Assembly: GCF_006345805.1 (NCBI RefSeq)
Contig: NW_021831832.1
Span: forward strand, 408-64,407
Source: Octopus sinensis
Lineage: Eukaryota
Reading direction: 5' to 3'
Length of the DNA: 64,000 nucleotides
The position numbers were made by a program, and so were the translations under genes. A model generated the notes under the pieces. That model was not told the DNA's origin. It saw nothing but the letters and a program-made list of their open reading frames with translations, and did not search any database. This document shows, in pieces, positions 2,370 to 32,346 of this stretch; the first letter of the stretch is position 1; the number at the start of each line of letters is the position of its first letter.

Positions 2370-2709
2370 TTCTTGGGACACAAAACTCTGCTTGCGAAAA
2401 CCTGTTGAGGCAAGTGAAATCGAAATCAATCAAAAATCAATGGAAATTGTAGTTGTGATACCAGTGCCGGTGGCACGTAAAATGCACCAACCGATCGTGG
2501 CTGTTGCCGGCCTCGCCTGGCACCTGTCTCGGTGGCACGATAAAAGCACCCACTACATTCACGGAGTGGTTGGCCATAGGAAGGGCATCCAGCTGTGGAA
2601 ACACTGCCACATCAGACTGGAGCCTGGTGCAGCCTCCTGGCTTCCCAGACCCTTGTCGAACCGTCCAACCCATGCCAGCATGGAAAACAGATGTTAAACG
2701 ATGATGATG
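2370..2709 (+). mobile_element. 5'-truncated RTE copy (last codons, UTR, tail)
   Basis: Conserved RTE 3' block ending gttaaacgatgatgatg. Confidence 0.85.
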
Positions 2710-4370: not shown

Positions 4371-4445
4371 TACAGTACAATAATGACCATTATCCTTGCT
4401 CTACAAGTTGCTGTCTTCGTAATGATCATTGTGACTCGGCCAAAG
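4371..4445 (+). CDS. Tetraspanin A, exon 3 (TM3: YSTIMTIILALQVAVFVMIIVTRPK)
   Basis: ttttccag acceptor and gtaatt donor. A 75-nt phase-0 TM3 exon is typical of tetraspanin genes. Confidence 0.92.
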
Positions 4446-4545
4446 GTAATTAGAATTAATTAAGAAAAACCTGATTATTTTTGATACAAATGAATCCAGT
4501 TTTAATTTATTACATATCTTGTTTTATGTTCACTTTTTTTATCAG

Positions 4546-7500
4546 TGATTGTTGCCGGAGCCACTGACTGGCTCCTGTGCCAGTGGCATGTAAAAAGCAC
4601 CATTCGAGCATGATCGTTGCCAGTGTTACCAGACTGGCTCCTGTGCCAGTGGCATGTAAAAAGCACCATTTGAGCATGGTCGATGCCTGACTGGCTCCTG
4701 TGCCAGTGACACATAAAAACACCATTCAAGTGTGGTCATTGCCAGTGGCATGTAAAAAGCACCATTTGAGCATGGTCGATGCCTGACTGGCTCCTGTGCC
4801 AGTGGCACATAAAAACACCATTCAAGTGTGGTCATTACCAGTGGCATGTACAAAGCACCATTCGAGCATGGTCGATGCCAGTGTTACCAGACTGGCTCCT
4901 GTGCCGTGGCATGTAAAAGCACCATTTGAGCATGGTCGATGCCTGACTGGCTCCTGTGCCAGTGGCACATAAAAACACACATTCAAGTGTGGTCATTGCC
5001 AGTGGCATGTAAAAAGCACCATTTGAGCATGATCGTTGCCAGTGTTACCAGACTGGCTCCTGTGCCAGTGACATGTAAAAACACCATTCAAGTGTGGTCA
5101 TTGCCAGTGGCATGTACAAAGCACCATTCGAGCATGATCGTTGCCAGTGTTACCAGACTGGCTCCTGTGCCAGTGGCATGTAAAAAGCCCATTTGAGCAT
5201 GGTCGATGGCTGACTGGCTACTGTGCCAGTGGCACATAAAAACAACACCATTCAAGTGTGGTCATTACCAGTGGCATGTACAAAGCACCATTCGAGCATG
5301 ATCGTTGCCAGTTTTACCAGACTGGCTCCTGTGCCAGTGACATGTAAAAAGCACCGTTTGAGCATGGTCGATGCCTGACTGGCTCCTGTGCCAGTGACAC
5401 ATAAAAACACCATTCAAGTGTGGTCATTACCAGTGGCATGTAAAAAGCACCATTCGAGCATGATCGTTGCCAGTGTTACCAGACTGGCTCCTGTGCCAGT
5501 GGCATGTAAAAAGCACCATTTGAGCATGGTCGATGGCTGACTGGTTCCTGTGCCAGTGACACATAAAAACACCATTCAAGTGTGGTCATTGCCAGTGGCA
5601 TGTAAAAAGCACCATTCGAGCATGGTCGATGCCTGACTGGCTCCTGTGCCAGTGGCACATAAAACAACCATTCAAGTGTGGTCATTACCAGTGGCATGTA
5701 CAAAGCACCATTCGAGCATGATCGTTGCCAGTGTTACCAGACTGGCTCCTGTGCCAGTGGCATGTAAAAAGCACCATTTGAGCATGGTCGATGGCTGACT
5801 GGTTCCTGTGCCAGTGACACAAAAAAACCATTCAAGTGTGGTCATTGCCAGTGGCATGTAAAAGCACCATTCGAGCATGATCGTTGCCAGTGTTACCAGA
5901 CTGGCTCCTGTGCCAGTGGCATGTAAAAAGCACCATTTGAGCATGGTCGATGGCTGACTGGTTCCTGTGCCAGTGGCACATAAAAACACCATTCAAGTGT
6001 GGTCATTGCCAGTGGCATGTAAAAAGCACCATTCGAGCATGATCGTTGCCAGTGTTACCAGACTGGCTCCTGTGCCAGTGGCATGTAAAAAGCACCATTT
6101 GAGCATGGTCGATGGCTGACTGGCTCCTGTGCCAGTGACACATAAAAACACCATTCAAGTGTGGTCATTGCCAGTGGCATGTAAAAAGCACCATTCGAGC
6201 ATGGTCGATGCCTGACTGGCTCCTGTGCCAGTGGCACATAAAAACACCATTCAAGTGTGGTCATTACCAGTGGCATGTACAAAGCACCATTCGAGCATGA
6301 TCGTTGCCAGTGTTACCAGACTGGCTCCTGTGCCAGTGGCATGTAAAAAGCACCATTTGAGCATGGTCGATGCCTGACTGGCTCCTGTGCCAGTGACACA
6401 TAAAAACACCATTCAAGTGTGGTCATTACCAGTGGCATGTACAAAGCACCATTCGAGCATGATCGTTGCCAGTGTTACCAGACTGGCTCCTGTGCCAGTG
6501 GCATGTAAAAAGCACCATTTGAGCATGGTCGATGCCTGACTGGCTCCTGTGCCAGTGGCACATAAAAACACCATTCAAGTGTGGTCATTGCCAGTGGCAT
6601 GTAAAAGCACCATTCGAGCATGATCGTTGCCAGTGTTACCAGACTGGCTCCTGTGCCAGTGACATGTAAAAAGCACCATTTGAGCATGGTCGATGCCTGA
6701 CTGGCTCCTGTGCCAGTGGCACATAAAAACACCATTCAAGTGTGGTCATTGCCAGTGGCATGTAAAAAGCACCATTCGAGCATGATCGTTGCCAGTGTTA
6801 CCAGACTGGCTCCTGTGCCAGTGGCATGTAAAAGCACCATTTGAGCATGGTCGATGCCTGACTGGCTCCTGTGCCAGTGGCACATAAAAACACCATTCAA
6901 GTGTGGTCATTGCCAGTGGCATGTAAAAAGCACCATTCGAGCATGATCGTTGCCAGTGTTACCAGACTGGCTCCTGTGCCAGTGGCATGTAAAAAGCACC
7001 ATTTGAGCATGGTCGATGCCTGACTGGCTCCTGTGCCAGTGGCACATAAAAACACCATTCAAGTGTGGTCATTACCAGTGGCATGTAAAAAGCACCATTC
7101 GAGCATGATCGTTGCCAGTGTTACCAGACTGGCTCCTGTGCCAGAGGCATGTACAAAGCACCATTTGAGCATGGTCGATGGCTAACTGGCTACTGTGCCA
7201 GTGGCACATAAAAACACCATTCAAGTGTGGTCATTACCAGTGGCATGTACAAAGCACCATTCGAGCATGATCGTTGCCAGTGTTACCAGACTGGCTCCTG
7301 TGCCAGTGGCATGTAAAAAGCACCATTTGAGCATGGTCGATGCCTGACTGGCTCCTGTGCCAGTGACACATAAAGACACCATTCAAGTGTGGTCATTACC
7401 AGTGGCATGTACAAAGCACCATTCGAGCATGATCGTTGCCAGTGTTGCCAGACTGGCCCCTGTGCCAGTGGCATATAAAAAGCACCGTTTGAGCATGGTC

Positions 7501-10500
7501 GATGCCTGACTGGCTCCTGTGCCAGTGACACATAGAATCACCATTCAAGTGTGGTCATTGCCAGTGGCATGTAAAAAGCACCATTCGAGCATGATCGTTG
7601 CCAGTGTTACCAGACTGGCTCCTGTGCCAGTGGCATGTAAAAAGCACCATTTGAGCATGGTCGATGCCTGACTGGCTCCTGTGCCAGTGACACATAAAAA
7701 CACCATTCAAGTGTGTTCAATGCCAGTGGCATGTAAAAAGCACCATTCGAGCATGATCGTTGCCAGTGTTACCAGACTGGCTCCTGTGCCAGAGGCATGT
7801 AAAAAGCACCATTTGAGCATGGTCGATGCCTGACTGGCTCCTGTGCCAGTGACACATAAAAACACCATTCAAGTGTGGTCATTGCCAGTGGCATGTAAAA
7901 GCACCATTCGAGCATGATCGTTGCCAGTGTTACCAGACTGGCTCCTGTGCCAGTGGCATGTAAAAAGCACCATTTGAGCATGGCCGATGCCTGACTGGCT
8001 CCTGTGCCAGTGACACATAAAAACCCCATTCAAGTGTGGTCATTACCAGTGGCATGTAAAAAGCACCATTCGAGCATGATCGTTGCCAGTGTTACCAGAC
8101 TGGCTCCTGTGCCAGTGGCATGTAAAAAGCACCATTTGAGCATGGTCGATGCCTGACTGGCTCCTGTGCCAGTGACACATAAAAACACCATTCAAGTGTG
8201 GTCATTACCAGTGGCATGTAAAAAACACCATTTGAGCATGGTCGATGGCTGACTGGCTACTGTGCCAGTGGCACATAAAAACACCATTCAAGTGTGGTCA
8301 TTACCAGTGGCATGTAAAAAGCACCATTCGAGCATGATCGTTGCCAGTGTTACCAGACTGGCTCCTGTGCCAGTGGCATGTAAAAAGCACCATTTGAGCA
8401 TGGTCGATGGCTGACTGGCTACTGTGCCAGTGGCACATAAAAACACCATTCAAGTGTGGTCATTACCAGTGGCATGTAAAAAGCACCATTCGAGCATGAT
8501 CGTTGCCAGTGTTACCAGACTGGCTCCTGTGCCAGTGGCATGTAAAAAGCACCATTTGAGCATGGTCGATGCCTGACTGGCTCCTGTGCCAGTGGCACAT
8601 AAAAACACCATTCAAATGTGGTCATTACCAGTGGCATGTAAAAAGCACCATTCGAGCATGATCGTTGCCAGTGTTACCAGACTGGCTCCTGTGCCAGTGG
8701 CATGTAAAAAGCACCATTTGAGCATGGCCGATGCCTGACTGGCTCCTGTGCCAGTGACACATAAAAACCCCATTCAAGTGTGGTCATTACCAGTGGCATG
8801 TAAAAAGCACCATTCGAGCATGATCGTTGCCAGTGTTACCAGACTGGCTCCTGTGCCAGTGGCATGTAAAAAGCACCATTTGAGCATGGTCGATGCCTGA
8901 CTGGCTCCTGTGCCAGTGACACATAAAAACACCATTCAAGTGTGGTCATTACCAGTGGCATGTAAAAAAACCATTTGAGCATGGTCGATGGCTGACTGGC
9001 TACTGTGCCAGTGCACATAAAAACACCATTCAAGTGTGGTCATTACCAGTGGCATGTAAAAAGCACCATTCGAGCATGATCGTTGCCAGTGTTACCAGAC
9101 TGGCTCCTGTGCCAGTGGCATGTAAAAAGCACCATTTGAGCATGGTCGATGGCTGACTGGCTACTGTGCCAGTGGCACATAAAAACACCATTCAAGTGTG
9201 GTCATTACCAGTGGCATGTACAAAGCACCATTCGAGCATGATCGTTGCCAGTGTTACCAGACTGGCTCCTGTGCCAGTGGCATGTAAAAAGCACCATTTG
9301 AGCATGGTCGATGCCTGACTGGCTCCTGTGCCAGTGACACATAAAAACACCATTCAAGTGTGGTCATTGCCAGTGGCATGTAAAAAGCACCAATCGAGCA
9401 TGGTCGATGCCAGTGTTACCAGACTGGCTCCTGTGCCAGTGGCATGTAAAAAGCACCATTTGAGCATGGTCGATGCCTGACTGGCTCCTGTGCCAGTGAC
9501 ACATAAAAACACCATTCAAGTGTGGTCATTGCCAGTGGCATGTAAAAAGCACCATTCGAGCATGGTCGATGCCAGTGTTACCAGACTGGCTCCTGTGCCA
9601 GTGGCATGTAAAAAGCACCATTTGAGCATGGTCGATGCCTGACTGGCTCCTGTGCCAGTGACACATAAAAACACCATTCAAGTGTGGTCATTGCCAGTGG
9701 CATGTAAAAAGCACCATTCGAGCATGGTCGATGCCAGTGTTACCAGACTGGCTCCTGTGCCAGTGGCATGTAAAAAGCACCATTTGAGCATGGTCGATGC
9801 CTGACTGGCTCCTGTGCCAGTGACACATAAAAACACCATTCAAGTGTGGTCATTGCCAGTGGCATGTAAAAAGCACCATTCGAGCATGGTCGATGCCAGT
9901 GTTACCAGACTGGCTCCTGTGCCAGTGGCATGTAAAAAGCACCATTTGAGCATGGTCGATGCCTGACTGGCTCCTGTGCCAGTGACACATAAAAACACCA
10001 TTCAAGTGTGGTCATTGCCAGTGGCATGTAAAAAGCACCATTCGAGCATGGTCGATGCCAGTGTTACCAGACTGGCTCCTGTGCCAGTGGCATGTAAAAA
10101 GCACCATTTGAGCATGGTCGATACCTGACTGGCTCCTGTGCCAGTGACACATAAAAACACCATTCAAGTGTGGTCATTGCCAGTGGCATGTAAAAGCACC
10201 ATTTGAGCATGGTCGATGCCTGACTGGCTCCTGTGCCAGTGACACATAAAAACACCATTCAAGTGTGGTCATTGCCAGTGGCATGTAAAAAGCACCATTC
10301 GAGCATGGTCGATGCCAGTGTTACCAGACTGGCTCCTGTGCCAGTGGCATGTAAGAAGCACCATTTGAGCATGGTCGATACCTGACTGGCTCCTGTGCCA
10401 GTGACACATAAAAACACCATTCAAGTGTGGTCATTGCCAGTGGCATGTAAAAGCACCATTTGAGCATGGTCGATGCCTGACTGGCTCCTGTGCCAGTGAC

Positions 10501-13500
10501 ACATAAAAACACCATTCAAGTGTGGTCATTGCCAGTGGCATGTAAAAAGCACCATTCGAGCATGGTCGATGCCAGTGTTACCAGACTGGCTCCTGTGCCA
10601 GTGGCATGTAAGAAGCACCATTTGAGCATGGTCGATACCTGACTGGCTCCTGTGCCAGTGACACATAAAAGCACCATTCAAGTGTGGTCATTGCCAGTGG
10701 AATGTAAAAAGCACCATTCGAGCATGATCGTTGCCAGTGTTACCAGACTGGCTCCTGTGCCAGTGGCATGTAAAAAGCACTATTTGAGCATGGTCGATGC
10801 CTGACTGGCTCCTGTGCCAGTGACACATAAAAACACCATTCAAGTGTGGTCATTGCCAGTGGCATGTAAAAGCACCATTTGAGCATGGTCGATGCCTGAC
10901 TGGCTCCTGTGCCAGTGACACATAAAAACACCATTCAAGTGTGGTCATTGCCACTGGCATGTAAAAAGCACCATTCGAGCATGGTCGATGCCAGTGTTAC
11001 CAGACTGGCTCCTGTGCCAGTGGCATGTAAGAAGCACCATTTGAGCATGGTCGATACCTGACTGGCTCCTGTGCCAGTGACACATAAAAACACCATTCAA
11101 GTGTGGTCATTGCCACTGGCATGTAAAAGCACCATTTGAGCATGGTCGATGCCTGACTGGCTCCTGTGCCAGTGACACATAAAAACACCATTCAAGTGTG
11201 GTCATTGCCAGTGGCATGTAAAAAGCACCATTCGAGCATGGTCGATGCCAGTGTTACCAGACTGGCTCCTGTGCCAGTGGCATGTAAAAAGCACCATTTG
11301 AGCATGGTCGATGCCTGACTGGCTCCTGTGCCAGTGACACATAAAAACACCATTCAAGTGTGGTCATTGCCAGTGGCATGTAAAAAGCACCATTCGAGCA
11401 TGGTCGATGCCAGTGTTACCAGACTGGCTCCTGTGCCAGTGGCATGTAAGAAGCACCATTTGAGCATGGTCGATACCTGACTGGCTCCTGTGCCAGTGAC
11501 ACATAAAAGCACCATTCAAGTGTGGTCATTGCCAGTGGCATGTAAAAAGCACCATTCGAGCATGATCGTTGCCAGTGTTACCAGACTGGCTCCTGTGCCA
11601 GTGGCATGTAAAAAGCACCATTTGAGCATGGTCGATGCCTGACTGGCTCCTGTGCCAGTGACACATAAAAACACCATTCAAGTGTGGTCATTGCCAGTGG
11701 CATGTAAAAAGCACCATTCGAGCATGGTCGATGCCAGTGTTACCAGACTGGCTCCTGTGCCAGTGGCATGTAAGAAGCACCATTTGAGCATGGTCGATAT
11801 CTGACTGGCTCCTGTGCCAGTGACACATAAAAGCACCATTCAAGTGTGGTCATTGCCAGTGGCATGTAAAAAGCACCATTCGAGCATGGTCGATGCCAGT
11901 GTTACCAGACTGGCTCCTGTGCCAGTGGCATGTAAGAAGCACCATTTGAGCATGGTCGATGCCTGACTGGCACCTGTGCCAGTGACACATAAAAACACCA
12001 TTCAAGTGTGGTCATTGCCAGTGGCATGTAAAAAGCACCATTCGAGCATGGTCGATGCCAGTGTTACCAGACTGGCTCCTGTGCCAGTGGCATGTAAGAA
12101 GCACCATTTGAGCATGGTCGATGCCTGACTGGCTCCTGTGCCAGTGACACATAAAAGCACCATTCAAGTGTGGTCATTGCCAGTGGCATGTAAAAGCACC
12201 ATTCGAGCATGATCGTTGCCAGTGTTACCAGACTGGCTCCTGTGCCAGTGGCATGTAAATAGCACCATTTGAGCATAGTCGATGCCTGACTGGCTCCTGT
12301 GCCAGTGACACATAAAAACACCATTCAAGTGTGGTCATTACCAGTGGCATGTAAAAAGCACCATTCGAGCATGATCGTTGCCAGTGTTACCAGACTGGCT
12401 CCTGTGCCAGTGGCATGTAAGAAGCACCATTTGAGCATGGTCGATGCCTGACTGGCTACTGTGCCAGTGGCACATAAAAACACCATTCAAGTGTGGTCAT
12501 TGCCAGTGGCATGTAAAAAGCACCATTCGAGCATGATCGTTGCCAGTGTTACCAGACTGGCTCCTGTGCCAGTGGCATGTAAAAAGCACCATTTGAGCAT
12601 GGTCGATGCCTGACTGGCTCCTGTGCCAGTGACACATAAAAACCCCATTCAAGTGTGGTCATTGCCAGTGGCATGTAAAAAGCACCATTCGAGCATGATC
12701 GTTGCCAGTGTTACCAGACTGGCTCCTGTGCCAGTGGCATGTAAGAAGCACCATTTGAGCATGGTCGATGGCTGACTGGCTACTGTGCCAGTGGCACATA
12801 AAAACACCATTCAAGTGTGGTCATTGCCAGTGGCATGTAAAAAGCACCATTCGAGCATGATCGTTGCCAGTGTTACCAGACTGGCTCCTGTGCCAGTGGC
12901 ATGTAAAAAGCACCATTTGAGCATGGTCGATGCCTGACTGGCTCCTGTGCCAGTGACACATAAAAACCCCATTCAAGTGTGGTCATTGCCAGTGGCATGT
13001 AAAAAGCACCATTCGAGCATGATCGTTGCCAGTGTTACCAGACTGGCTCCTGTGCCAGTGGCATGTAAAAAGCACCATTTGAGCATGGTCGATGCCTGAC
13101 TGGCTCCTGTGCCAGTGACACATAAAAACCCCATTCAAGTGTGGTCATTACCAGTGGCATGTACAAAGCACCATTCGAGCATGATCGTTGCCAGTGTTAC
13201 CAGACAGGCTCCTGTGCCAGTGGCATGTAAAAAGCACCATTTGAGCATGGTCGATACCTGACTGGCTCCTGTGCCAGTGACACATAAAAACACCATTCAA
13301 GTGTGGTCATTACCAGTGGCATGTAAAAAGCACCATTCGAGCATGATCGTTGCCAGTGTTACCAGACTGGCTCCTGTGCCAGTGGCATGTAAAAAGCACC
13401 ATTTGAGCATGGTCGATACCTGACTGGCTCCTGTGCCAGTGACACATAAAAACCCCATTCAAGTGTGGTCATTGCCAGTGGCATGTAAAAGCACCATTCG

Positions 13501-16500
13501 AGCATGATCGTTGCCAGTGTTACCAGACTGGCTCCTGTGCCAGAGGCATGTAAAAGCACCATTTGAGCATGGTCGATGCCTGACTGGCTACTGTGCCAGT
13601 GGAACATAAAAACACCATTCAAGTGTGGTCATTACCAGTGGCATGTACAAAGCACCATTCGAGCATGATCGTTGCCAGTGTTACCAGACAGGCTCCTGTG
13701 CCAGTGGCATGTAAAAAGCACCATTTGAGCATGGTCGATGCCTGACTGGCTCCTGTGCCAGTGACACATAAAAACACCATTCAAGTGTGGTCATTACCAG
13801 TGGCATGTAAAAAGCACCATTCGAGCATGATCGTTGCCAGTGTTACCAGACTGGCTCCTGTGCCAGTGACATGTAAAAAGCACCATTTGAGCATGGTCGA
13901 TGCCTGACTGGCTACTGTGCCAGTGGCACATAAAAACACTATTCAAGTGTGGTCATTGCCAGTGGCATGTAAAAAGCACCATTCGAACATGATCGTTGCC
14001 AGTGTTACCAGACTGGCTCCTGTGCCAGAGGCATGTAAAAAGCACCATTTGAGCATGGTCGATGCCTGACTGGCTACTGTGCCAGTGGCACATAAAAACA
14101 CCATTCAAGTGTGGTCATTGCCAGTGGCATGTAAAAAGCACCATTCGAGCATGATCGTTGCCAGTGTTACCAGACTGGCTCCTGTGCCAGTGGCATGTAA
14201 GAAGCACCATTTGAGCATGGTCGATGCCTGACTGGCTACTGTGCCAGTGGCACATAAAAACACCATTCAAGTGTGGTCATTGCCAGTGGCATGTAAAAAG
14301 CACCATTCGAGCATGATCGTTGCCAGTGTTACCAGACTGGCTCCTGTGCCAGTGGCATGTAAAAAGCACCATTTGAGCATGGTCGATGCTGACTGGCTCC
14401 TGTGCCAGTGACACATAAAAACACCATTCAAATGTGGTCATTGCCACTGGCATGTAAAAAGCACCATTTGAGCATGGTCGATGCCTGACTGGCTGCTGTG
14501 CCAGTGACACATAAAAACACGATTCAAGTGTGGTCATTGCCAGTGGCATGTAAAAAGCACCATTCGAGCATGGTCGATGCCTGACTGGCTCCTGTGCCAG
14601 TGACACATAAAAACACCATTCAAGTGTGGTCATTGCCAGTGGCATGTAAAAAGCACCATTTGAGCATGGTCGATGCCTGACTGGCTGCTGTGCCAGTGAC
14701 ACATAAAAACACGATTCAAGTGTGGTCATTGCCAGTGGCATGTAAAAAGCACCATTCGAGCATGATCGTTGCCAGTGTTACCAGACTGGCTCCTGTGCCA
14801 GAGGCATGTAAAAAGCACCATTTGAGCATGGTCGATACCTGACTGGCTCCTGTGCCAGTGACACATAAAAACCCCATTCAAGTGTGGTCATTGCCAGTGG
14901 CATGTAAAAAGCACCATTCGAGCATGATCGTTGCCAGTGTTACCAGACTGGCTCCTGTGCCAGAGGCATGTAAAAAGCACCATTTGAGCATGGTCGATAC
15001 CTGACTGGCTCCTGTGCCAGTGACACATAAAAACCCCATTCAAGTGTGGTCATTGCCAGTGGCATGTAAAAAGCACCATTCGAGCATGATCGTTGCCAGT
15101 GTTACCAGACTGGCTCCTGTGCCAGAGGCATGTAAAAAGCACCATTTGAGCATGGTCGATACCTGACTGGCTCCTGTGCCAGTGACACATAAAAACCCCA
15201 TTCAAGTGTGGTCATTGCCAGTGGCATGTAAAAAGCACCATTCGAGCATGATCGTTGCCAGTGTTACCAGAGTGGCTCCTGTGCCAGAGGCATGTAAAAA
15301 GCACCATTTGAGCATGGTCGATACCTGACTGGCTCCTGTGCCAGTGATACATAAAAACCCCATTCAAGTGTGGTCATTACCAGTGGCATGTAAAAGCACC
15401 ATTCGAGCATGATCGTTGCCAGTGTTACCAGACTGGCTCCTGTGCCAGAGGCATGTAAAAAGCACCATTTGAGCATGGTCGATACCTGACTGGCTCCTGT
15501 GCCAGTGACACATAAAAACACCATTCAAGTGTCGTCATTGCCAGTGGCATGTAAAAAGCACCATTCGAGCATGATCGTTGCCAGTGTTACCAGACTGGCT
15601 CCTGTGCCAGTGACATGTAAAAAGCACCATTTGAGCATGGTCGATGCCTGACTGGCTCCTGTGCCAGTGGCATGTAAAAAGCACCATTTGAGCATGGTCG
15701 ATGCCTGACTGGCTCCTGTGCCAGTGGCACATAAAAACACCATTCAAGTGTGGTCATTGCCAGTGGCATGTAAAAAGCACCATTCGAGCATGATCGTTGC
15801 CAGTGTTACCAGACTGGCTCCTGTGCCAGTGTCATGTAAAAGCACCATTTGAGCATGGCCGATGCCTGACTGGCTCCTGTGCCAGTGGGACATAAAAACA
15901 CCATTCAAGTGTGGTCATTGCCAGTGGCATGTAAAAAGCACCATTCGAGCATGATCGTTGCCAGTGTTACCAGACTGGCTCCTGTGCCAGTGGCATGTAA
16001 AAAGCACCATTTGAGCATGGTCGATACCTGACTGGCTCCTGTGCCAGTGACACATAAAAACACCATTCAAGTGTGGTCATTGCCAGTGGCATGTAAAAAG
16101 CACCATTCGAGCATGATCGTTGCCAGTGTTACCAGACTGGCTCCTGTGCCAGTGGCATGTAAAAAGCACCATTTGAGCATGGCCGATGCCTGACTGGCTC
16201 CTGTGCCAGTGGCACATAAAAACACCATTCAAGTGTGGTCATTGCCAGTGGCATGTAAAAAGCACCATTCGAGCATGATCGTTGCCAGTGTTACCAGACT
16301 GGCTCCTGTGCCAGTGACACATAAAAACACCATTCAAGTGTGGTCATTGCCAGTGGCATGTAAAAAGCACCATTCGAGCATGATCGTTGCCAGTGTTACC
16401 AGACTGGCTCCTGTGCCAGTGGCATGTAAAAAGCACCATTTGAGCATGGTCGATGCCTGACTGGCTCCTGTGCCAGTGACACATAAAAACACCATTCAAG

Positions 16501-19500
16501 TGTGGTCATTGCCAGTGGCATGTAAAAAGCACCATTCGAGCATGATCGTGCCAGTGTTACCAGACTGGCTCCTGTGCCAGTGGCACATAAAAACACCATT
16601 CAAGTGTGGTCATTGCCAGTGGCATGTAAAAGCACCATTCGAGCATGATCGTTGCCAGTGTTACCAGACTGGCTCCTGTGCCAGTGGCACATAAAAACAC
16701 ACCATTCAAGTGTGGTCATTGCCAGTGGCATGTAAAAAGCACCATTCGAGCATGATCGTTGCCAGTGTTACCAGACTGGCTCCTGTGCCAGTGACACATA
16801 AAAACACCATTCAAGTGTGGTCATTGCCAGTGGCATGTAAAAAGCACCATTCGAGCATGATCGTTGCCAGTGTTACCAGACTGGCTCCTGTGCCAGTGGC
16901 ATGTAAAAAGCACCATTTGAGCATGGTCGATACCTGACTGGCTCCTGTGCCAGTGACACATAAAAACACCATTCAAGTGTGGTCATTGCCAGTGGCATGT
17001 AAAAAGCACCATTCGAGCATGATCGTTGCCAGTGTTACCAGACTGGCTCCTGTGCCAGTGACATGTAAAAAGCACCATTTGAGCATGGCCGATGCCTGAC
17101 TGGCTGCTGTGCCAGTGACACATAAAAACACCATTCAAGTGTGGTCATTGCCAGTGGCATGTAAAAGCACCATTCGAGCATGATCGTTGCCAGTGTTACC
17201 AGACTGGCTCCTGTGCCAGTGACACATAAAAACACCATTCAAGTGTGGTCATTGCCAGTGGCATGTAAAAAGCACCATTTGAGCATGGTCGATGCCAGTG
17301 TTACCAGACTGGCTCCTGTGCCAGTGACATGTAAAAAGCACCATTTGAGCATGGCCGATGCCTGACTGGCTGCTGTGCCAGTGACACATAAAAACACCAT
17401 TCAATGTGGTCATTGCCAGTGGCATGTAAAAGCACCATTCGAGCATGATCGTTGCCAGTGTTACCAGACTGGCTCCTGTGCCAGTGACACATAAAAACAC
17501 CATTCAAGTGTGGTCATTGCCACTGGCATGTAAAAAGCACCTTTTGAGCATGGTCGATGCCTGACTGGCTCCTGTGCCAGTGACACATAAAAACACCATT
17601 CAAGTGTAGTCATTGCCAGTGGCATGTAAAAAGCACCATTCGAGCATGATCGTTGCCAGTGTTACCAGACTGGCTCCTGTGCCAGTGGCATGTAAAAAGC
17701 ACCATTTGAGCATAGTCGATGCCTGACTGGCTCCTGTGCCAGTGACACATCAAAACACCATTCAAGTGTGGTCATTGCCAGTGGCATGTAAAAAGCACCA
17801 TTCGAGCATGGTCGATGCCTGACTGGCTCCTGTGCCAGTGACACATAAAAACACCATTCAAGTGTGGTCATTGCCAGTGGCATGTAAAAAGCACCATTCG
17901 AGCATGGTCGATGCCTGACTGGCTGCTGTGCCAGTGGCACATAAAAACACCATTCAAGTGTGGTCATTGCCAGTGGCATGTAAAAGCACCATTCGAGCAT
18001 GATCGTTGCCAGTGTTACCAGACTGGCTCCTGTGCCAGTGACATGTAAAAAGCACCGTTTGAGCATGGTCGATGCCTGACTGGCTCCTGTGCCAGTGACA
18101 CATAAAAACACCATTCAAGTGTGGTCATTGCCAGTGGCATGTAAAAAGCACCATTCGAGCATGATCGTTGCCAGTGTTACCAGACTGGCTCCTGTGCCAG
18201 TGACATGTAAAAAGCACCGTTTGAGCATGGTCGATGCCTGACTGGCTGCTGTGCCAGTGGCACATAAAAACACCATTCAAGTGTGGTCATTGCCAGTGGC
18301 ATGTAAAAAGCACCATTCGAGCATGATCGTTGCCAGTGTTACCAGACTGGCTCCTGTGCCAGTGACATGTAAAAAGCACCATTCGAGCATGGTCGATGCC
18401 TGACTGGCTCCTGTGCCAGTGACACATAAAAACACCATTCAAGTGTGGTCATTGCCAGTGGCATGTAAAAAGCACCATTCGAGCATGATCGTTGCCAGTG
18501 TTACCAGACTGGCTCCTGTGCCAGTGACATGTAAAAAGCACCGTTTGAGCATGGTCGATGCCTGACTGGCTCCTGTGCCAGTGACACATAAAAACACCAT
18601 TCAAGTGTGGTCATTGCCAGTGGCATGTAAAAAGCACCATTCGAGCATGATCGTTGCCAGTGTTACCAGACTGTCTCCTGTGCCAGTGGCATGTAAAAAG
18701 CACCATTTGAGCATGGCCGATGCCTGACTGGCTCCTGTGCCAGTGGCACATAAAAACACCATTCAAGTGTGGTCATTGCCAGTGGCATGTAAAAAGCACC
18801 ATTCGAGCATGATCGTTGCCAGTGTTACCAGACTGGCTCCTGTGCCAGTGACATGTAAAAAGCACCATTTGAGCATGGTCGATGGCTGACTGGCTACTGT
18901 GCCAGTGGCACATAAAAACACCATTCAAGTGTGGTCATTGCCAGTGGCATGTAAAAAGCACCATTCGAGCATGATCGTTGCCAGTGTTACCAGACTGGCT
19001 CCTGTGCCAGTGGCATGTAAAAAGCACCATTTGAGCATAGTCGATGCCTGACTGGCTCCTGTGCCAGTGGCACATAAAAACACCATTCAAGTGTGGTCAT
19101 TGCCAGTGGCATGTAAAAAGCACCATTCGAGCATGATCGTTGCCAGTGTTACCAGACTGGCTCCTGTGCCAGTGGCATGTAAAAAGCACCATTTGAGCAT
19201 AGTCGATGCCTGACTGGCTACTGTGCCAGTGGCACATAAAAACACCATTCAAGTGTGGTCATTGCCAGTGGCATGTAAAAAGCACCATTCGAGCATGATC
19301 GTTGCCAGTGTTGCCAGACTGGCCCCTGTGCCAGTGGCATGTAAAAAAGCACATTTGAGCATGGTCGATGCCTGACTGGCTCCTGTGCCAGTGACACATA
19401 AAAACACCATTCAAGTGTGGTCATTGCCAGTGGCATGTAAAAAGCCCATTCGAGCATGATCGTTGCCAGTGTTGCCAGACTGGCCCCTGTGCCAGTGGCA

Positions 19501-22500
19501 TGTAAAAAGCACCATTTGAGCATGGTCGATGCCTGACTGGCTCCTGTGCCAGTGACACATAAAAGCACCATTCAAGTGTGGTCATTGCCAGTGGCATGTA
19601 AAAAGCACCATTCGAGCATGATCGTTGCCAGTGTTACCAGACTGGCCCCTGTGCCAGTGACATGTTAAAAGCACCATTTGAGCATGGTCGATGCCTGACT
19701 GGCTCCTGTGCCAGTGACACATAAAAACACCATTCAAGTGTGGTCATTGCCAGTGGCATGTAAAAGCACCATTCGAGCATGATCGTTGCCAGTGTTACCA
19801 GACTGGCCCCTGTGCCAGTGGCATGTAAAAAGCACCATTTGAGCATGGTCGATGCCTGACTGGCTCCTGTGCCAGTGGCACATAAAAACACCATTCAAGT
19901 GTGGTCATTGCCAGTGGCATGTAAAAAGCACCATTCGAGCATGATCGTTGCCAGTGTTGCCAGACTGGCCCCTGTGCCAGTGGCATGTAAAAAGCACCAT
20001 TTGAGCATGGTCGATGCCTGACTGGCTCCTGTGCCAGTGACACATAAAACACACCATTCAAGTGTGGTCATTGCCAGTGCATGTAAAAAGCACCATTCGA
20101 GCATGATCGTTGCCAGTGTTGCCAGACTGGCCCCTGTGCCAGTGGCATGTAAAAGCACCATTTGAGCATGGTCGATGCCTGACTGGCTCCTGTGCCAGTG
20201 ACACATAAAAACACATTCAAGTGTGGTCATTGCCAGTGGCATGTAAAAAGCACCATTCGAGCATAATCGTTGCCAGTGTTGCCAGACTGGCCCCTGTGCC
20301 AGTGGCATGTAAAAAGCACCATTTGAGCATGGTCGATACCTGACTGGCTCCTGTGCCAGTGACACATAAAAACACCATTCAAGTGTGGTCATTGCCAGTG
20401 GCATGTAAAAAGCACCATTCGAGCATGATCGTTGCCAGTGTTACCAGACTGGCTCCTGTGCCAGTGACATGTAAAAAGCACATTTGAGCATGGCCGATGC
20501 CTGACTGGCTGCTGTGCCAGTGACACATAAAAACACCATTCAAGTGTGGTCATTGCCAGTGGCATGTAAAAAGCACCATTCGAGCATGATCGTTGCCAGT
20601 GTTACCAGACTGGCTCCTGTGCCAGTGACACATAAAAACACCATTCAAGTGTGGTCATTGCCAGTGGCATGTAAAAAGCACCATTTGAGCATGGTCGATG
20701 CCTGACTGGCTCCTGTGCCAGTGGCACATAAAAACACCATTCAAGTGTGGTCATTGCCAGTGGCATGTAAAAAGCACCATTCGAGCATGATCGTTGCCAG
20801 TGTTACCAGACTGGCTCCTGTGCCAGTGACACATAAAAACACCATTCAAGTGTGGTCATTGCCAGTGGCATGTAAAAAGCACCATTTGAGCATGTCGATG
20901 CCTGACTGGCTCCTGTGCCAGTGGCACATAAAAACACCATTCAAGTGTGGTCATTGCCAGTGGCATGTAAAAGCACCATTCGAGCATGATCGTTGCCAGT
21001 GTTACCAGACTGGCTCCTGTGCCAGTGACACATAAAAACCACCATTCAAGTGTAGTCATTGCCAGTGGCATGTAAAAAGCACCATTTGAGCATGGTCGAT
21101 GCCTGACTGGCTCCTGTGCCAGTGACACATAAAAACACCATTCAAGTGTGGTCATTGCCAGTGGCATGTAAAAAGCACCATTCGAGCATGATCGTTGCCA
21201 GTGTTACCAGACTGTCTCCTGTGCCAGTGACACATAAAAACACCATTCAAGTGTGGTCATTACCAGTGGCATGTAAAAGCACCATTTGAGCATGATCGTT
21301 GCCAGTGTTACCAGACTGGCTCCTGTGCCAATGGCATGTAAAAAGCACCATTTGAGCATGGTCGATGCCTGACTGGCTCCTGTGCCAGTGACACATAAAA
21401 CACACCATTCAAGTGTGGTCATTGCCAGTGGCATGTAAAAAGCACCATTCGAGCATGGTCGATGCCTGACTGGCTCCTGTGCCAGTGACACAAAAAACAC
21501 CATTCAAGTGTGGTCATTGCCAGTGGCATGTAAAAAGCACCATTCGAGCATGGTCGATGCCTGACTGGCTGCTGTGCCAGTGGCACATAAAAACACCATT
21601 CAAGTGTGGTCATTGCCAGTGGCATGTAAAAAGCACCATTCGAGCATGGTCGATGCCTGACTGGCTGCTGTGCCAGTGGCACATAAAAACACCATTCAAG
21701 TGTGGTCATTGCCAGTGGCATGTAAAAAGCACCATTCAAGCATGATCGTTGCCAGTGTTACCAGACTGGCTCCTGTGCCAGTGACATGTAAAAAGCACCG
21801 TTTGAGCATGGTCGATGCCTGACTGGCTCCTGTGCCAGTGACACATAAAAACACCATTCAAGTGTGGTCATTGCCAGTGGCATGTAAAAAGCACCATTCG
21901 AGCATGATCGTTGCCAGTGTTACCAGACTGTTTCCTGTGCCAGTGGCATGTAAAAAGCACCATTTGAGCATGGCCGATGCCTGACTGGCTCCTGTGCCAG
22001 TGGCACATAAAAACACCATTCAAGTGTGGTCATTGCCAGTGGCATGTAAAAAGCACCATTCGAGCATGATCGTTGCCAGTGTTACCAGACTGGCTCCTGT
22101 GCCAGTGACATGTAAAAAGCACCATTTGAGCATGGTCGATGGCTGACTGGCTACTGTGCCAGTGGCACATAAAAACACCATTCAAGTGTGGTCATTGCCA
22201 GTGGCATGTAAAAAGCACCATTCGAGCATGATCGTTGCCAGTGTTACCAGACTGGCTCCTGTGCCAGTGGCATGTAAAAAGCACCATTTGTGCATAGTCG
22301 ATGCCTGACTGGCTCCTGTGCCAGTGGCACATAAAAACACCATTCAAGTGTGGTCATTGCCAGTGGCATGTAAAAAGCACCATTCGAGCATGATCGTTGC
22401 CAGTGTTACCAGACTGGCTCCTGTGCCAGTGGCATGTAAAAAGCACCATTTGAGCATAGTCGATGCCTGACTGGCTACTGTGCCAGTGGCACATAAAAAC

Positions 22501-25275
22501 ACCATTCAAGTGTGGTTCATTGCCAGTGGCATGTAAAAAGCACCATTCGAGCATGATCGTTGCCAGTGTTGCCAGACTGGCCCCTGTGCCAGTGGCATGT
22601 AAAAAGCACCATTGAGCATGGTCGATGCCTGACTGGCTCCTGTGCCAGTGACATAAAAACACCATTCAAGTGTGGTCATTGCCAGTGGCATGTAAAAAGC
22701 ACCATTCGAGCATGATCGTTGCCAGTGTTACCAGACTGGCCCCTGTGCCAGTGGCATGTAAAAGCACCATTTGAGCATGGTCGATGCCTGACTGGCTCCT
22801 GTGCCAGTGACACATAAAAACACCATTCAAGTGTGGTCATTGCCAGTGGCATGTAAAAAGCACCATTCGAGCATGATCGTTGCTAGTGTTGCCAGACTGG
22901 CCCCTGTGCCAGTGGCATGTAAAAGCACCATTTGAGCATGGTCGATGCCTGACTGGCTCCTGTGCCAGTGGCACATAAAAACACCATTCAAGTGTGGTCA
23001 TTGCCAGTGGCAATGTAAAAAGCACCATTCGAGCATGATCGTTGCCAGTGTTGCCAGACTGGCCCCTGTGCCAGTGGCATGTAAAAGCACCATTTGAGCA
23101 TGGTCGATGCCTGACTGGCTCCTGTGTCAGTGACACATAAAAACACCATTCAAGTGTGGTCATTGCCAGTGGCATGTAAAAAGCACCATTCGAGCATGAT
23201 CGTTGCCAGTGTTGCCAGACTGGCCCCTGTGCCAGTGGCATGTAAAAAGCACCATTTGAGCATGGTCGATGCCTGACTGGCTCCTGTGCCAGTGGCACAT
23301 AAAAACACCATTCAAGTGTGGTCATTGCCAGTGGCATGTAAAAGCACCATTTGAGCATGGTCGATGCCTGACTGGCTCCTGTGCCAGTGACACATAAAAA
23401 CCCATTCAAGTGTGGTCATTGCCAGTGGCATGTAAAAAAGCACATTCGAGCATGATCGTTGCCAGTGTTACCAGACTGGCTCCTGTGCCAGTGGACATGT
23501 AAAAAGCACCGTTTGAGCATGGTCGATGCCTGACTGGCTCCTGTGCCAGTGACACATAAAAACACCATTCAAGTGTGGTCATTGCCAGTGGCATGTAAAA
23601 AGCACCATTCGAGCATGATCGTTGCCAGTGTTACCAGACTGGCTCCTGTGCCAGTGACATGTAAAAAGCACCATTTGAGCATGGTCGATGGCTGACTGGC
23701 TACTGTGCCAGTGGCACATAAAAACACCATTCAAGTGTGGTCATTGCCAGTGGCATGTAAAAAGCACCATTCGAGCATGATCGTTGCCAGTGTTGCCAGA
23801 CTGGCCCCTGTGCCAGTGGCATGTAAAAAGCATCATTTGAGCATGGTCGATGCCTGACTGGCTCCTGTGCCAGTGACACATAAAAACACCATTCAAGTGT
23901 GGTCATTGCCAGTGGCATGTAAAAAGCACCATTCGAGCATGATCGTTGCCAGTGTTACCAGACTGGCTCCTGTGCCAGTGACATGTAAAAAGCACCATTT
24001 GAGCATGGTCGATGGCTGACTGGCTACTGTGCCAGTGCACATAAAACACCATTCAAGTGTGTCATTGCCAGTGGCATGTAAAAAGCACCATTCGAGCATG
24101 ATCGTTGCCAGTGTTGCCAGACTGGCCCCTGTGCCAGTGGCATAAAAAGCACCATTTGAGCAGGGTCGATGCCTGACTGGCTCCTGTGCCAGTGACACAT
24201 AAAAACACCATTCAAGTGTGGTCATTGCCAGTGGCATGTAAAAGCACCATTCGAGCATGATCGTTGCCAGTGTTACCAGACTGGCTCCTGTGCCAGTGAC
24301 ATGTAAAAAGCACCATTTGAGCATGGTCGATGCCTGACTGGCTCCTGTGCCAGTGACACATAAAAACACCATTCAAGTGTGGTCATTGCCAGTGGCATGT
24401 AAAAAGCACCATTCGAGCATGGTCGATGCCTGACTGGCTCCTGTGCCAGTGACACATAAAAACACCATTCAAGTGTGGTCATTGCCAGTGGCATGTAAAA
24501 AGCACCATTCGAGCATGATCGTTGCCAGTGTTACCAGACTGGCTCCTGTGCCAGTGACATGTAAAAAGCACCATTTGAGCATGGTCGATGCCTGACTGGC
24601 TCCTGTGCCAGTGACACATAAAAACACCATTGAAGTGTGGTCATTACCAGTGGCATGTACAAAGCACCATTCGAGCATGGTCGATGCCTGACTGGCTCCT
24701 GTGCCAGTGACACATAAAAACACCATTCAAGTGTGGTCATTGCCAGTGGCATGTAAAAAGCACCATTCGAGCATGATCGTTGCCAGTGTTGCCAGACTGG
24801 CTCCTGTGCCAGTGGCATGTAAAAAGCACCATTTGAGCATGGTCGATGCCTGACTGGCTCCTGTGCCAGTGGCACATAAAAACACCATTCAAGTGTGGTC
24901 ATTGCCAGTGGCATGTAAAAAGCACCATTCGAGCATGATCGTTGCCAGTGTTGCCAGACTGGCCCCTGTGCCAGTGGCATGTAAATAGCACCATTTGAGC
25001 ATGGTCGATGCCTGACTGGCTCCTGTGCCAGTGACACATAAAAACACCATTCAAGTGTGGTCATTGCCAGTGGCATGTAAAAAGCACCATTCGAGCATGA
25101 TCGTTGCCAGTGTTACCAGACTGGCTCCTGTGCCAGTGGCATGTAAAAAGCACCATTTGAGCATGGTCGATGCCTGACTGGCTACTGTGCCAGTGGCACA
25201 TAAAAACACCATTTGAGCGTGGTCATTGCCAGTGTCACCAGACTGGCTCCTGTGCTGGTGGAACGTAAAAGCACC
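4546..25275 (+). repeat. ~20.7-kb intronic satellite, basic higher-order unit 162 bp (subunits A 66, B 56, C 40)
   Basis: Period 162 measured directly (taccagac at 7931 and 8093). All subunits share the core gccagtg(g/a)ca..taaaaa(g)caccatt. Variant periods of 96, 105 and 257 bp also occur. Confidence 0.98.
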
Positions 25276-25444
25276 CACTACACTCTTGAAGTGGTTGGCG
25301 TTAGGAAGGGCATCCAGCTGTAGAAACTCTGCCAGATCAAGACTGATGCCTGATGCAGCCATCTGGTTCGCTAGCCCTCAGTCAAACCATCCAACCCATG
25401 CTAGCATGGAAAGTGGGCGTTAAACGATGATGATGATGATGATG
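25276..25444 (+). mobile_element. RTE LINE 3' tail closing the satellite
   Basis: cactacactc...gtggttggcgttaggaagggcatccagc...ccatgctagcatggaaag...gttaaac(gat)n, the same terminus as the RTE at 47357-50780. Confidence 0.92.
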
Positions 25445-25497
25445 TTATTGAATATTGAAAATATATTGAAGATATTTCTAAACTTCTTCCATTCTAG

Positions 25498-25590
25498 TTT
25501 GAGAAAACTGTAAAGGACGCTCTAAAAGAACTGTTTGAGAAGTCGAAAAGCCCTGAACAGAAGGCGGTTGTTTCAAATCTCTTCACAAAT
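25498..25590 (+). CDS. Tetraspanin A, exon 4 (large-loop helices: FEKTVKDALKELFEKSKSPEQKAVVSNLFTN)
   Basis: ttccattctag acceptor and gtgagt donor; 93 nt, open, amphipathic helical sequence at the expected position. Confidence 0.85.
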
Positions 25591-26584
25591 GTGAGTAGAA
25601 GTTAAGCTTTCTGTTGTAAGATAGAATTATTGCTGGTTTGATAACTTTCTTACCTGAAAAAAAAAAAAAAAAAAAAAAATTCTAAACATTGCAAATATGA
25701 AACTTGTTAATAATTTACCAGTTCAGATTTATGTCAAGTAAACATATTTTAATTGAATGTACTTTGGTCTCTGAGTAAATGTATTTTGGCCTTGTGATTA
25801 GTTTAATATTTACAGGTTACAGATTTCAAGGCAGTAAGTTAGTAAATTTGTTACCGCTCTGGGCAAAATGTTTAGTAGCATTTTGTTCATCTTTTCTGGT
25901 TTAAATTTGGCTGAGGTCGACCTTACCTTTTATCCTTTTCGGGGTTAATAAAATAAGTACTGTTGAGAACTAGGGGTCAATGCAATCCACTTTTTCTCTC
26001 CTTCGAAATTGCTGGCCTTGTGCCAAAATTTGAAAGCAATATTTACTGATTTCTTTTGGTTTAACCCTTTCATTACCAACCCGGCTGAAACCGGTCTGGC
26101 TCTGAATACAAATGTCTTGTTTTTATAAGTTTTGAATTAAAATCTTCCACCAAACCTTAGTCACAATTTATATTCCTAACACTAACTTAATGATAACTAA
26201 GTTATTTTACTAAATTATTTGTTATATTTAAAATTAATTGAAAGAAACACAGGGCATCTCAAAATAAATACAGTAATGAAAGGGTTAATGCTAATTAGGA
26301 ACCTTAATGAACATACTGCCTTAATGATGTTATGAATTTAACTCAAATTAATGAGAATGTTTTTCAATATGTGGTTCATTAGGGCAGTGAGCGTGCAGAA
26401 AGGTTATCACACCTGGCAGTATTTCGTCTGTCTCTATGTTCTGAGCTCAAATTCCACCTAGGTTGACTTTGTCTTTCATCCTTTCGGGGTCAATAAATAA
26501 AGTACCAGTTGTGTACTGGGGTCAATCTAATCAACTGACTCTGCTCCCTCAAAATTTCGGGCCTTGTGGTTCATTTGTACATTA

Positions 26585-27439
26585 TAGTGTGCGGTGAATA
26601 AACTGTCATCTAAATTACACAAAAATGAAAATAACACTGACATCTCATTTTAAGATATATTTACCAAAATTACATAAAAATATCTTAAAATACTAAAGAG
26701 TAAATTTATTCAATAAAATCGCCATTGGCTTCAACCATGGCCTCCAGATGACTTTGGAATCTCCTGCAACTCTTCTGGATGGCCTCCTTGTTTATGTTGG
26801 TCAGTGCTGCCATAATCCTTGCCATCAGTTCCTCTTTGGTGTTACAAGGAGTTTTGTTGGTCTCTCACTCAACTGTGTCCCACACATAATAATGCAGGGG
26901 GTTGCAGTATGGGGAGTTAGGTGGCCAGATGTTAGGGGTTATGTGGTCGCAGAAATTGACAGCCATGAGTTGGTTCTCTTACTTGTAAGGCATGGTGCAG
27001 AGTCCTGTTGCCAGACATAAGGTCTTCCAGCGGCCACCCTCTTGACCCAGGGCAGCACTGCCTCCTCCAGACACCTGATGTTGGCCTCCGTGTTGAGTGT
27101 GAGGCTGTGTGGGAAGATGAATGGATGCATAACGTTGCCATCACTAGTGATCACTCCAAACACCATGATGTTGACTGGACGTTTGATTTTTATCACTCTC
27201 GGTATATGTCCTTGGATCAACACCCAATCACTTGGAAATGTTTGTATTGGAGCTTCCAGCACAAATGCCAAGTCATTTCCAAATTTCTAGCTGAGTGAAT
27301 TACATCATGGTGATGTCTTTTTTACAGACAGTGCCCAACTGACCCAACTATACTGTGTAGCTGACAAAATGTAAAACAAACAATGCATATACTTAAAATT
27401 AAAAGCATAAAATGGCAACAATTTACTCACAGCACCCTG
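26585..27439 (-). mobile_element. Internally deleted Tc1/mariner transposon (maT/DD37D-like), left-arm copy
   Basis: TA flanks and imperfect ~26-bp TIRs (cagggtgctgtgagtaaattgt). Transposase remnants VMVFGVITSDG, WQQDSAP and WPPNSPYCNPLHYYVW; the last catalytic Asp is mutated. Confidence 0.85.
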
Positions 27440-28202
27440 TATATTAAAACTTAAATGTCTATAAAAATACATCAATAGGTTAATAGTTGTCCAGAGTTAG
27501 ATGTTGACGACTGCTTTGAAAGCACTTCTGTTAGCACAATCCATCACATTCTGTTATTAATGGCTGATGGAGTTTACAGTTCACAACAGGTTTCTCATTT
27601 ACATTCATCAATGTGTTATGTTTCTTGATTCACTTTAAAATGGATTAATATTTTAAAAAGTCAACAGTTTAAACCATCATCTAAATCTTTAGATTTTTAT
27701 TTTCCTAAAATTTTCGTTGCGTCTTGCAACCTTTTCAATAGTTTTGACTCTTTGGAAATTTTACCGGTGAGTGTGTTACATAATAAGGCACAAAAAGAAA
27801 ATGACTCTCCCCAGACACAATAGAATATGCTTCAACACACGAACTCATATAAAGAACCTTGCAAACCAAATCCCCAAACGAAATAAATCTTTAGACCTAT
27901 TAGAATAATGTAATAATTTGATTGACAAATATGTGTGTGTGTGTGTGTGTGTTGTGTGGAGAGATAGAGAGATAAAGATACATGAATGTATACATACATC
28001 TCCAGGACTTTTTTAATGGTGGTGCCCCAGCATGGCCACAGCTTGTGAGCTGAAACTAGATAAATAAAAAAAAAAAAATACATATAGATAGATGCAGAGA
28101 TAGGTCAATGAGACGACATAGCTGAATAGAGGAAAATCTATAAAAATATAGGCGTTTATAATCAATGTATGATTGAGTCTTTGATTTTTTTTCTTTTTCC
28201 AG

Positions 28203-32045: not shown

Positions 32046-32108
<63 letters not shown>

Positions 32109-32311: not shown

Positions 32312-32346
<35 letters not shown>

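Follow-up and report, generated by a model that had tools for sequence, protein, structure and literature searches.

The growth of long tandem arrays from repeats carried within the 3' untranslated regions (3' UTRs) of mobile elements is an already known class of mechanism, of which the octopus locus described here is a further case. The DNA under consideration, referred to throughout as the window, is a stretch of 64,000 nucleotides (1-64000) from Octopus sinensis, taken from the unplaced contig VCDQ01000450.1 of assembly GCA_006345805.1, which probes drawn from the window match at 100%, and running from position 408 of that contig to its end. Within it a tetraspanin gene carries, in its third intron, a tandem array of 20.7 kb that passes directly into the 3' tail of an RTE-type long interspersed nuclear element (LINE). 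We consider it probable, at roughly 0.85, that this array represents an in situ expansion of the 3'-UTR minisatellite of one old, 5'-truncated copy of an RTE-type LINE.

Several described systems resemble parts of this arrangement. In plants, the Ty3/gypsy element Ogre, through its hypervariable 3' UTR, has given rise to satellites, PisTR-A of pea among them (Macas et al. 2009, relayed in PMC9659126). As far as that relayed account goes, the likeness lies in the amplification into long arrays of a repeat that already existed in a retroelement 3' UTR, and the difference in the parent, which for Ogre is a long terminal repeat (LTR) element that has seeded several loci, whereas the octopus has a non-LTR, RTE-type parent, one intronic locus and a tail that is still attached. 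LINEs themselves have provided 18HT (from the HeT-A 3' region in Drosophila), the common cetacean satellite (from the L1 3' end) and the chicken HinfI satellite (from the CR1 3' UTR/ORF2) (PMC9659126). In these, as would be the case here, a 3' portion of a LINE has become the monomer of a tandem array; they are abundant, often centromeric and have lost their founder, whereas the octopus locus keeps founder, flanks and low-copy intermediates in sister species. Closer to home, in octopus RTE-2_OV and its relatives the 3' UTR, given as about 600 nt, is mostly a tandem repeat that starts just past the open reading frame (ORF) (Petrosino et al. 2022, PMC9115989). The genus is the same and the layout is that of a LINE copy within the window (47357-50780), but that account (PMC9115989) describes neither expansion beyond the element nor an intronic array. 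Arrays are also carried by the foldback element Tetris of Drosophila virilis (PMC4079207), as the central repeats of DINE-1/Helitron elements and as the satellite-like repeats of oyster Helentrons (PMC7492417). In all of these an internal tandem repeat of a mobile element seeds longer arrays, yet there a DNA transposon or Helitron is the parent and short arrays are scattered in large numbers, whereas here a single LINE fragment would have been extended 40- to 70-fold at one site.

Primate alpha satellite has a higher-order repeat organisation, and the octopus array resembles it both in the likeness of its three-monomer units (96-98%, against about 79-95% between monomers) and in containing domains and sub-unit variants; it is unlike alpha satellite in being tiny, in not being centromeric as far as is known and in having monomers that differ by deletions. 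Intron 3 of human CACNA1C holds a 30-bp intronic variable number tandem repeat (VNTR) with a large lineage-specific expansion. The parallel is of an array of kilobases to tens of kilobases within one intron that is short in relatives and varies in length between haplotypes, although taxon and unit structure differ and no attached mobile-element parent is reported for CACNA1C. What is less common at the octopus locus is that founder and junctions are kept, that low-copy intermediates survive in sister species whose divergence is dated, that the formation of a higher-order repeat from deletion variants is visible and that all of this lies within an annotated gene.

Anatomy of the array and its intron

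The ORF pieces flanking the array join into one tetraspanin gene on the plus strand, whose best protein matches are O. sinensis models with PF00335. One of these, the RefSeq model XP_029654621.2 (P0016), is encoded on VCDQ01000450.1 and takes the whole array as intron 3. The intron and its neighbouring exons are laid out as follows.

4371-4445, plus strand: tetraspanin exon 3, 25 codons, YSTIMTIILALQVAVFVMIIVTRPK; AG acceptor intact, GT donor at 4446
4446-4545, plus strand: left unique part of intron 3, 100 bp
4546-25275, plus strand: tandem array, 20,730 bp, 389 monomers
25276-25444, plus strand: RTE-type LINE 3' tail, unique 169 bp, ending in (GAT)6 and continuous with the last monomer
25445-25497, plus strand: right unique part of intron 3, 53 bp, AG acceptor included
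25498-25590, plus strand: tetraspanin exon 4, 31 codons, FEKTVKDALKELFEKSKSPEQKAVVSNLFTN; AG at 25496-25497, GT at 25591

Intron 3 (4446-25497) measures 21,052 bp, of which 153 bp lie outside the insertion, and the exons and splice sites on both sides of it are still intact. An earlier note on this DNA had described a non-repeat intron of 100 + 53 bp, flanking exons that look undamaged, roughly 128 unit-equivalents (20,730 bp divided by 162) and an inflation of more than 100-fold from an intron of about 150 bp, and each of these descriptions is borne out by the coordinates above. Its observation that the array runs unbroken into the tail is upheld both by Tandem Repeats Finder (TRF) and by direct reading of the border.

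TRF describes a single continuous array over about 4.6-25.2 kb, with periods of 57/96/105/162/258/324/486 bp and scores of up to 13,805, and the GC content across it is flat at 0.49-0.50. At the 5' border a partial first unit begins at 4546, directly after tttttttatcag, whilst at the 3' border the last monomer passes without a break into the unique tail at 25276. Tokenised on the conserved core CCAGTG[G/A]CA[T/C][G/A]TAAAA, with lengths taken from core to core, the array resolves into monomers arranged head to tail throughout, with a foreign insert in none of it. There are three classes of monomer: c, the full-length form of 66 bp; a, of 57 bp, which aligns to c with a 9-bp gap (a deletion relative to c) and 3 mismatches; and b, of 39 bp, which carries a 27-bp deletion relative to c and is about 79% identical to it. 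The predominant order is abc, which makes up a 162-bp higher-order unit present in 106 intact copies. Variants are scattered among these, namely ab with 96 bp, bc with 105 bp and a small number of others, and it is this mixture that generates the set of periods reported by TRF.

Among abc copies of exact length, identity to the consensus is 98.0%, identity between neighbours 97.1% and identity in random pairs 96.6%. As such copies are far more alike than are the monomers inside one unit, the array is a true higher-order repeat. Its variable sites are few, of intermediate frequency and spatially clustered, with some variants alternating with a period of 2, from which the 324-bp super-unit arises. 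Many of the minor alleles are the state found in another monomer type, and several variants are CpG transitions. The array repeats segments of ~3 kb at distances of ~6.1-6.9 kb, the copies being 94-97% identical, and no multi-kb internal block of at least 99% identity was found. Such a pattern fits growth by out-of-register exchange together with block duplication; neither one homogeneous burst nor looping by the assembler fits it. In its folding the 162-bp unit is unremarkable (DNA fold z-score of -0.98), no evidence of function was seen and the array is most likely neutral, unstable intronic DNA. Within about 330 kb of octopus loci the 162-bp unit is confined to this locus; the array is a locus-specific higher-order minisatellite with one known locus, for which "satellite" is a generous label.

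The LINE tail and its relatives

The window contains 17 copies of the 169-bp tail, with identities of 74-89%, and just one of these copies falls within 4546-25444. With one tail, and none internal to the array, nested insertions are therefore excluded. What sort of element did this tail belong to? The most complete relative in the window is the following.

47357-50780, minus strand: LINE relative, 3,424 bp, 5'-truncated and with a broken reading frame; VNTR, tail and (GAT)n at its 3' end

This copy contains a 393-aa ORF with a match to Pfam RVT_1 (E = 1.5e-14). To the 5' side of the ORF are a linker, the start of the reverse transcriptase (RT) and, as judged by eye, an AP-endonuclease-like domain of which the final ~85 residues are present; stop codons lie between these parts. 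The 3' UTR begins about 50 bp past the stop codon and has a 61-bp VNTR of 11 units (47534-48201) followed by the tail and (GAT)n. Ends of this kind, in which a simple repeat takes the place of poly(A), are found at 25427-25444, 45764-45778 and 47357-47380, and the combination of a tandem-repeat 3' UTR with a short simple-repeat end is an RTE-like layout that agrees with PMC9115989. The earlier note had likened the array subunits to the VNTR of the 47357-50780 copy and described the parent as still attached. This copy, 5'-truncated within the endonuclease domain and with a broken ORF, is a relative of the founder and not the parent of the array; the founder's own tail is indeed still attached to the array. 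As a separate observation, the RT ORF (48249-49430, minus strand) has a cysteine-rich segment past the RT, with weak PHD/C1 Pfam matches over residues 126-176, and many of its invertebrate homologues have precomputed PF00628.

The array monomers match the VNTR at 45462-45537 with 83% identity over 76 bp and that at 21-67 with 87% over 47 bp, while their identity to the VNTR of the 47357-50780 element is about 70%. The homology between array subunits and RTE VNTRs that had been proposed for all three is real but moderate. Judged from the window alone it seems plausible, not compelling (70-87%), and it is the short orthologous arrays in other species that provide decisive support. Among the window's RTE-tail copies the VNTR varies from 2.4 to 13 units, and across the same ~330 kb of octopus loci all RTE-tail VNTRs other than the array are 0.8 kb or shorter, with 0.67-0.8 kb as the most that they reach.

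The borders of the 47357-50780 LINE are exact, since they are set by the empty site (39360-39376) in the other arm of an inverted duplication to which we return below: the element replaced a 17-bp target (TACGATTTTCTATTTAG) and created no target-site duplication. At the founding insertion of the array no target-site duplication longer than about 4 bp was found, an absence that is uninformative because the related LINE inserted with a 17-bp target deletion and no duplication.

The same insertion in other octopus loci

The corresponding intron was compared across the following loci.

O. bimaculoides (L002, GCA_001194135.2): junction 100 bp past exon 3, reading ...ttttcag and then cgtgattgttgcc; about five 66-bp units (~355 bp), tail, (GAT)n
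O. vulgaris (L006, GCA_951406725.2, Oxford Nanopore (ONT) assembly): 512 bp of repeat, consisting of a partial unit, abc-abc and two c-like units, then tail
O. sinensis window (VCDQ01000450.1): 20,730 bp, 389 monomers
O. sinensis second spanning contig (L001, VCDQ01000572.1): 35,151 bp, 689 monomers
O. sinensis chromosome copies (L007 and L008, CM016861.1): 110 kb apart in the same orientation; left flank and first 9.9 kb of array as in L001, 99.6%

Up to the junction, the left 100 bp of intron 3 are identical in the two spanning O. sinensis contigs and O. vulgaris, with a few substitutions in O. bimaculoides, and in all four the founding insertion has the same truncation point, the same orientation and the same distance from exon 3. 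The 169-bp tail of the window is 98.2% identical to that of O. vulgaris and 83.5% to that of O. bimaculoides. The earlier claim that a single insertion was amplified in situ is well supported by the one tail and by the same truncated insertion in its short state in both of these species.

The repeat itself differs between the species in an ordered manner. That of O. bimaculoides consists of full-length 66-bp units only ("ccc" plus a 41-bp duplication), and the a and b deletion variants are absent both from this species and from the window's other VNTR copies. Set against the consensus of the O. sinensis array, the two abc copies of O. vulgaris show differences at 2 of 162 positions. The a and b variants and the 162-bp unit therefore appeared once O. 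bimaculoides had split off, and the unit stood at two copies before the large expansion. O. bimaculoides diverged about 34 million years (My) ago, and O. sinensis and O. vulgaris separated about 2.5 My ago (PMC10700109). Because the insertion is shared with O. bimaculoides it is old, at about 34 My or more. It then stayed at about five units for tens of My, and the expansion came late, acting on a deletion-derived three-monomer unit. The notion that the insertion seeded the array thus stands as regards the identity of the seed, but not as regards immediacy, as expansion followed much later. The idea of a LINE-to-satellite transition fares similarly: the array is LINE-derived, but what has formed is a minisatellite specific to one locus, with a length of 20.7 or 35.2 kb depending on the contig.

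In O. bimaculoides an unrelated insertion of 1.1 kb separates (GAT)n from the shared right flank; found in this species only (L002 14388-15483), it abuts the end of (GAT)n exactly and part of it matches 31835-32076 of the window. Intron 3 of Argonauta hians (L010), of about 1.8 kb, has unrelated tail fragments and no alignable flanks, and so does not inform on the ancestral empty site.

A stepwise model

These states can be arranged into a scheme of three steps. In the first, before the split from O. bimaculoides (about 34 My), the 3' end of a LINE entered the tetraspanin's intron 3, of ~150 bp, in sense orientation and at a point 100 bp from its start, bringing with it about five 66-bp VNTR units, the 169-bp tail and (GAT)n, with no clear target-site duplication; the shared junction shows this. 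In the second, internal deletions in the ancestor of O. vulgaris and O. sinensis produced the 57/39/66-bp variants and from them the 162-bp unit, which was duplicated to abc-abc, the arrangement that O. vulgaris has today. In the third, the unit grew in O. sinensis, presumably through repeated out-of-register exchange and block duplication, to the ~128 unit-equivalents seen in the window, and on the second contig to 35.2 kb by a secondary burst of about 190 "ab" dimers. In that contig the first ~10 units are followed by these 96-bp dimers (~18 kb), which the window lacks, and the last ~9.7 kb of the array together with 16 kb downstream match the window at 99.6%.

How recent is this last step? 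We put forward tentatively, at a little under even odds, that the expansion took place in O. sinensis alone and within no more than about 2.5 My, having taken two 162-bp units to 128-217 unit-equivalents, with strong length polymorphism in one individual (20.7 against 35.2 kb, the ~18-kb "ab" burst being private to the longer allele) and with the founding LINE tail and two earlier stages kept in the sister species. If it is so, the locus would offer a dated, stepwise natural series in which a satellite is born from the 3' UTR of a LINE, within a gene that is expressed and evolves fast.

Weighing the alternatives

Fundamental to the question of timing is an inverted duplication that occupies much of the window downstream of the array.

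26192-41614 (plus) against 64000-44781 (minus): arms of the inverted duplication, with a spacer of ~3.2 kb at 41615-44780

The arms are 96-99% identical in BLAST, with substitutions of 0.05-2.2%, and the right arm, which reaches the contig end, bears exons 5-7 of a second tetraspanin at 61598-61533, 57898-57803 and 55684-55634. This second copy is termed B, and the array-bearing copy A. The window ends at 64000, 748 bp before the expected tail of B, and intron 3 of B lies outside the readable O. sinensis sequence. The palindrome may be genuine, or haplotypes or paralogues may have been joined into a chimera. A small-scale case of array-type instability is visible between the arms, where an RTE-tail VNTR with a 62-bp unit measures 486 bp on the left (29821-30306) and 799 bp (12.9 copies, 94% matches) both on the right (59174-59972) and in O. 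vulgaris (L006 49399-50197).

Several observations weigh against the origin and the timing proposed above. The O. vulgaris locus shares with the right (B) arm a filled LINE site, the 799-bp and 668-bp VNTRs and an ancestral-type exon 6. The pairwise divergence of abc copies, about 3.4-4%, exceeds the divergence between flanks of O. sinensis and O. vulgaris, about 1-1.5%. The length of the array is that given by PacBio assembly contigs, which are unplaced and redundant, and the two contigs that span it disagree, at 20.7 and 35.2 kb, a difference of 14.4 kb. Finally, the homology search with the RT returned proteins that were unnamed or "uncharacterized", and the RTE clade is a tentative assignment.

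The first two of these observations bear on a reading that accepts the same origin with another timing, in which the short O. vulgaris array belongs to the paralogous B copy and A had expanded before the species split, perhaps being long in O. vulgaris as well. The expansion would then be neither specific to O. sinensis nor 2.5 My old or younger. In its favour, both the right arm and O. vulgaris carry the 3,424-bp LINE, which is missing from the left arm and likewise from the second O. sinensis contig and from O. bimaculoides; O. vulgaris also has both of the right arm's VNTRs and the B type of exon 6, and the internal diversity of the array is greater than the interspecies flank divergence. 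The O. vulgaris gene may accordingly be orthologous to B, in which case B there has the insertion with two units and the expansion in A is dated only as after the A/B split. The excess diversity may reflect a start to the expansion before the species split, or faster mutation in the array. Against this, no A-like O. vulgaris protein is present in the protein collection, the two arms and O. vulgaris have shared-derived sites that conflict and are too few to decide the orthology, and the palindrome may itself be a chimeric join of two haplotypes. On balance we regard the earlier expansion as unlikely, if by no means fanciful.

A second reading is that the repeat exists but that its 20-35 kb were made or inflated by the assembler, the true allele being short as in O. 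vulgaris, whose ONT assembly has merely 512 bp. The O. sinensis assembly combines PacBio with Hi-C and has about 86% of its sequence placed on chromosomes (PMC10700109), and the window is one of its unplaced contigs. The locus is represented four times in it (VCDQ01000450.1, L001, L007 and L008), the two spanning contigs are unequal in length, and in the chromosome copies (L007, L008) the gene models run on into the array, ending in exon 3. The spanning contigs have left flanks that are 98.8-100% identical, left halves of the array that differ structurally and right halves that are the same. They are not simple deletion variants of one another, and look like two haplotypes or very recent paralogues that share one side, a chimeric join inside the array also being possible. 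The left flank with ~10 kb of array is present in triplicate (L001, L007, L008), which points to haplotypes that were left uncollapsed and/or to a segmental duplication of recent date, the contigs being broken within the array. Beyond 4.8 kb upstream of exon 1, L007 diverges from the other copies, and its flank combines window-type with L001-type sequence as a mosaic. An artefact is nonetheless very improbable: at least 9.9 kb of array occurs in all four contigs, supporting an array of at least 10 kb in O. sinensis; three of them have one monomer string in common over 10 kb, and the spanning pair agree at 99.6% over the last ~9.7 kb; the lack of multi-kb internal blocks at 99% identity or above is unlike looping through the same reads; and the variants form ordered domains along the array.

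A third possibility, which we hold to be very improbable, concerns the parent, which would have been a short non-autonomous element resembling a short interspersed nuclear element (SINE) and sharing just the VNTR and tail of the RTE. In O. vulgaris about 11.6% of the genome consists of SINEs (PMC13282606), and, the 47357-50780 copy apart, none of the other tail copies in the window (16 besides that of the array) extends into coding sequence. Against it, that one long copy has the order ORF, VNTR, tail. A SINE head is disfavoured: nowhere in the window are there tRNA genes or Rfam families at gathering score, nor is there a common head upstream of the VNTRs. The copies begin at varied points in VNTR or tail, in the manner of 5'-truncated LINEs. 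That the insertion was already long on arrival, from a source transcript with a multi-kb VNTR, could draw on the variable copy number among copies (2.4-13 units) but has a negligible chance, being refuted by the short orthologous insertions of O. bimaculoides and O. vulgaris with their identical junction and opposed by the lack of the 57/39/66-bp deletion variants in O. bimaculoides and in the window's other copies.

The host gene

The remaining exons of the array-bearing tetraspanin are as follows.

1007-1072, plus strand: exon 1
1166-1393, plus strand: exon 2
28203-28268, plus strand: exon 5, 22 codons; CCG motif NSCCGIDKPEDVAKYNFRCDNM
about 31581-31676, plus strand: exon 6
34469-34519, plus strand: exon 7

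PF00335 is carried by the O. sinensis models P0016 and P0001, and exon 5 encodes NSCCG, the CCG motif of the large extracellular loop. Both models (212 aa) end in ...VQVCSHF, reading into the intron past exon 6 (about 31677-31691), and a conserved last exon, IVFACCLCNSKRGETPS, lies at 34469-34519; the 227-aa model of O. bimaculoides makes use of it. A C-terminal truncation of the O. sinensis models is probable.

Between O. sinensis and O. vulgaris the tetraspanin has 25 nonsynonymous and 3 synonymous differences, a ratio of nonsynonymous to synonymous differences per site (pN/pS) of about 2.4, which is not clearly apart from neutrality because the synonymous changes are so few; against O. bimaculoides the ratio is about 0.6-0.7. 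The exons used were 1007-1072, 1166-1393, 4371-4445, 25498-25590, 28203-28256 (the first 18 of the 22 codons of exon 5), 31581-31676 and 34469-34519. Either a relaxation of constraint after duplication or positive selection could lie behind the very fast evolution between O. sinensis and O. vulgaris. Intron 2 has two RTE-tail copies of its own, arranged head to head at 2461-2709 (plus) and 3153-2856 (minus), both of which begin near the start of the 3' UTR.

Significance

The locus is a warning that octopus RTE tails are hotspots of assembly breaks and false duplications. The origin of satellites from mobile elements is well accepted, yet it is mostly inferred long afterwards. The octopus locus shows three successive states, namely a plain 66-bp VNTR, a deletion-derived 162-bp unit in two copies, and arrays of 20-35 kb with secondary sub-unit bursts. 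Given the published divergence times, it could be used to gauge the speed with which higher-order repeats form and grow, and it could equally be used to ask whether an intron made 140- to 230-fold larger alters the splicing or the expression of its host gene.

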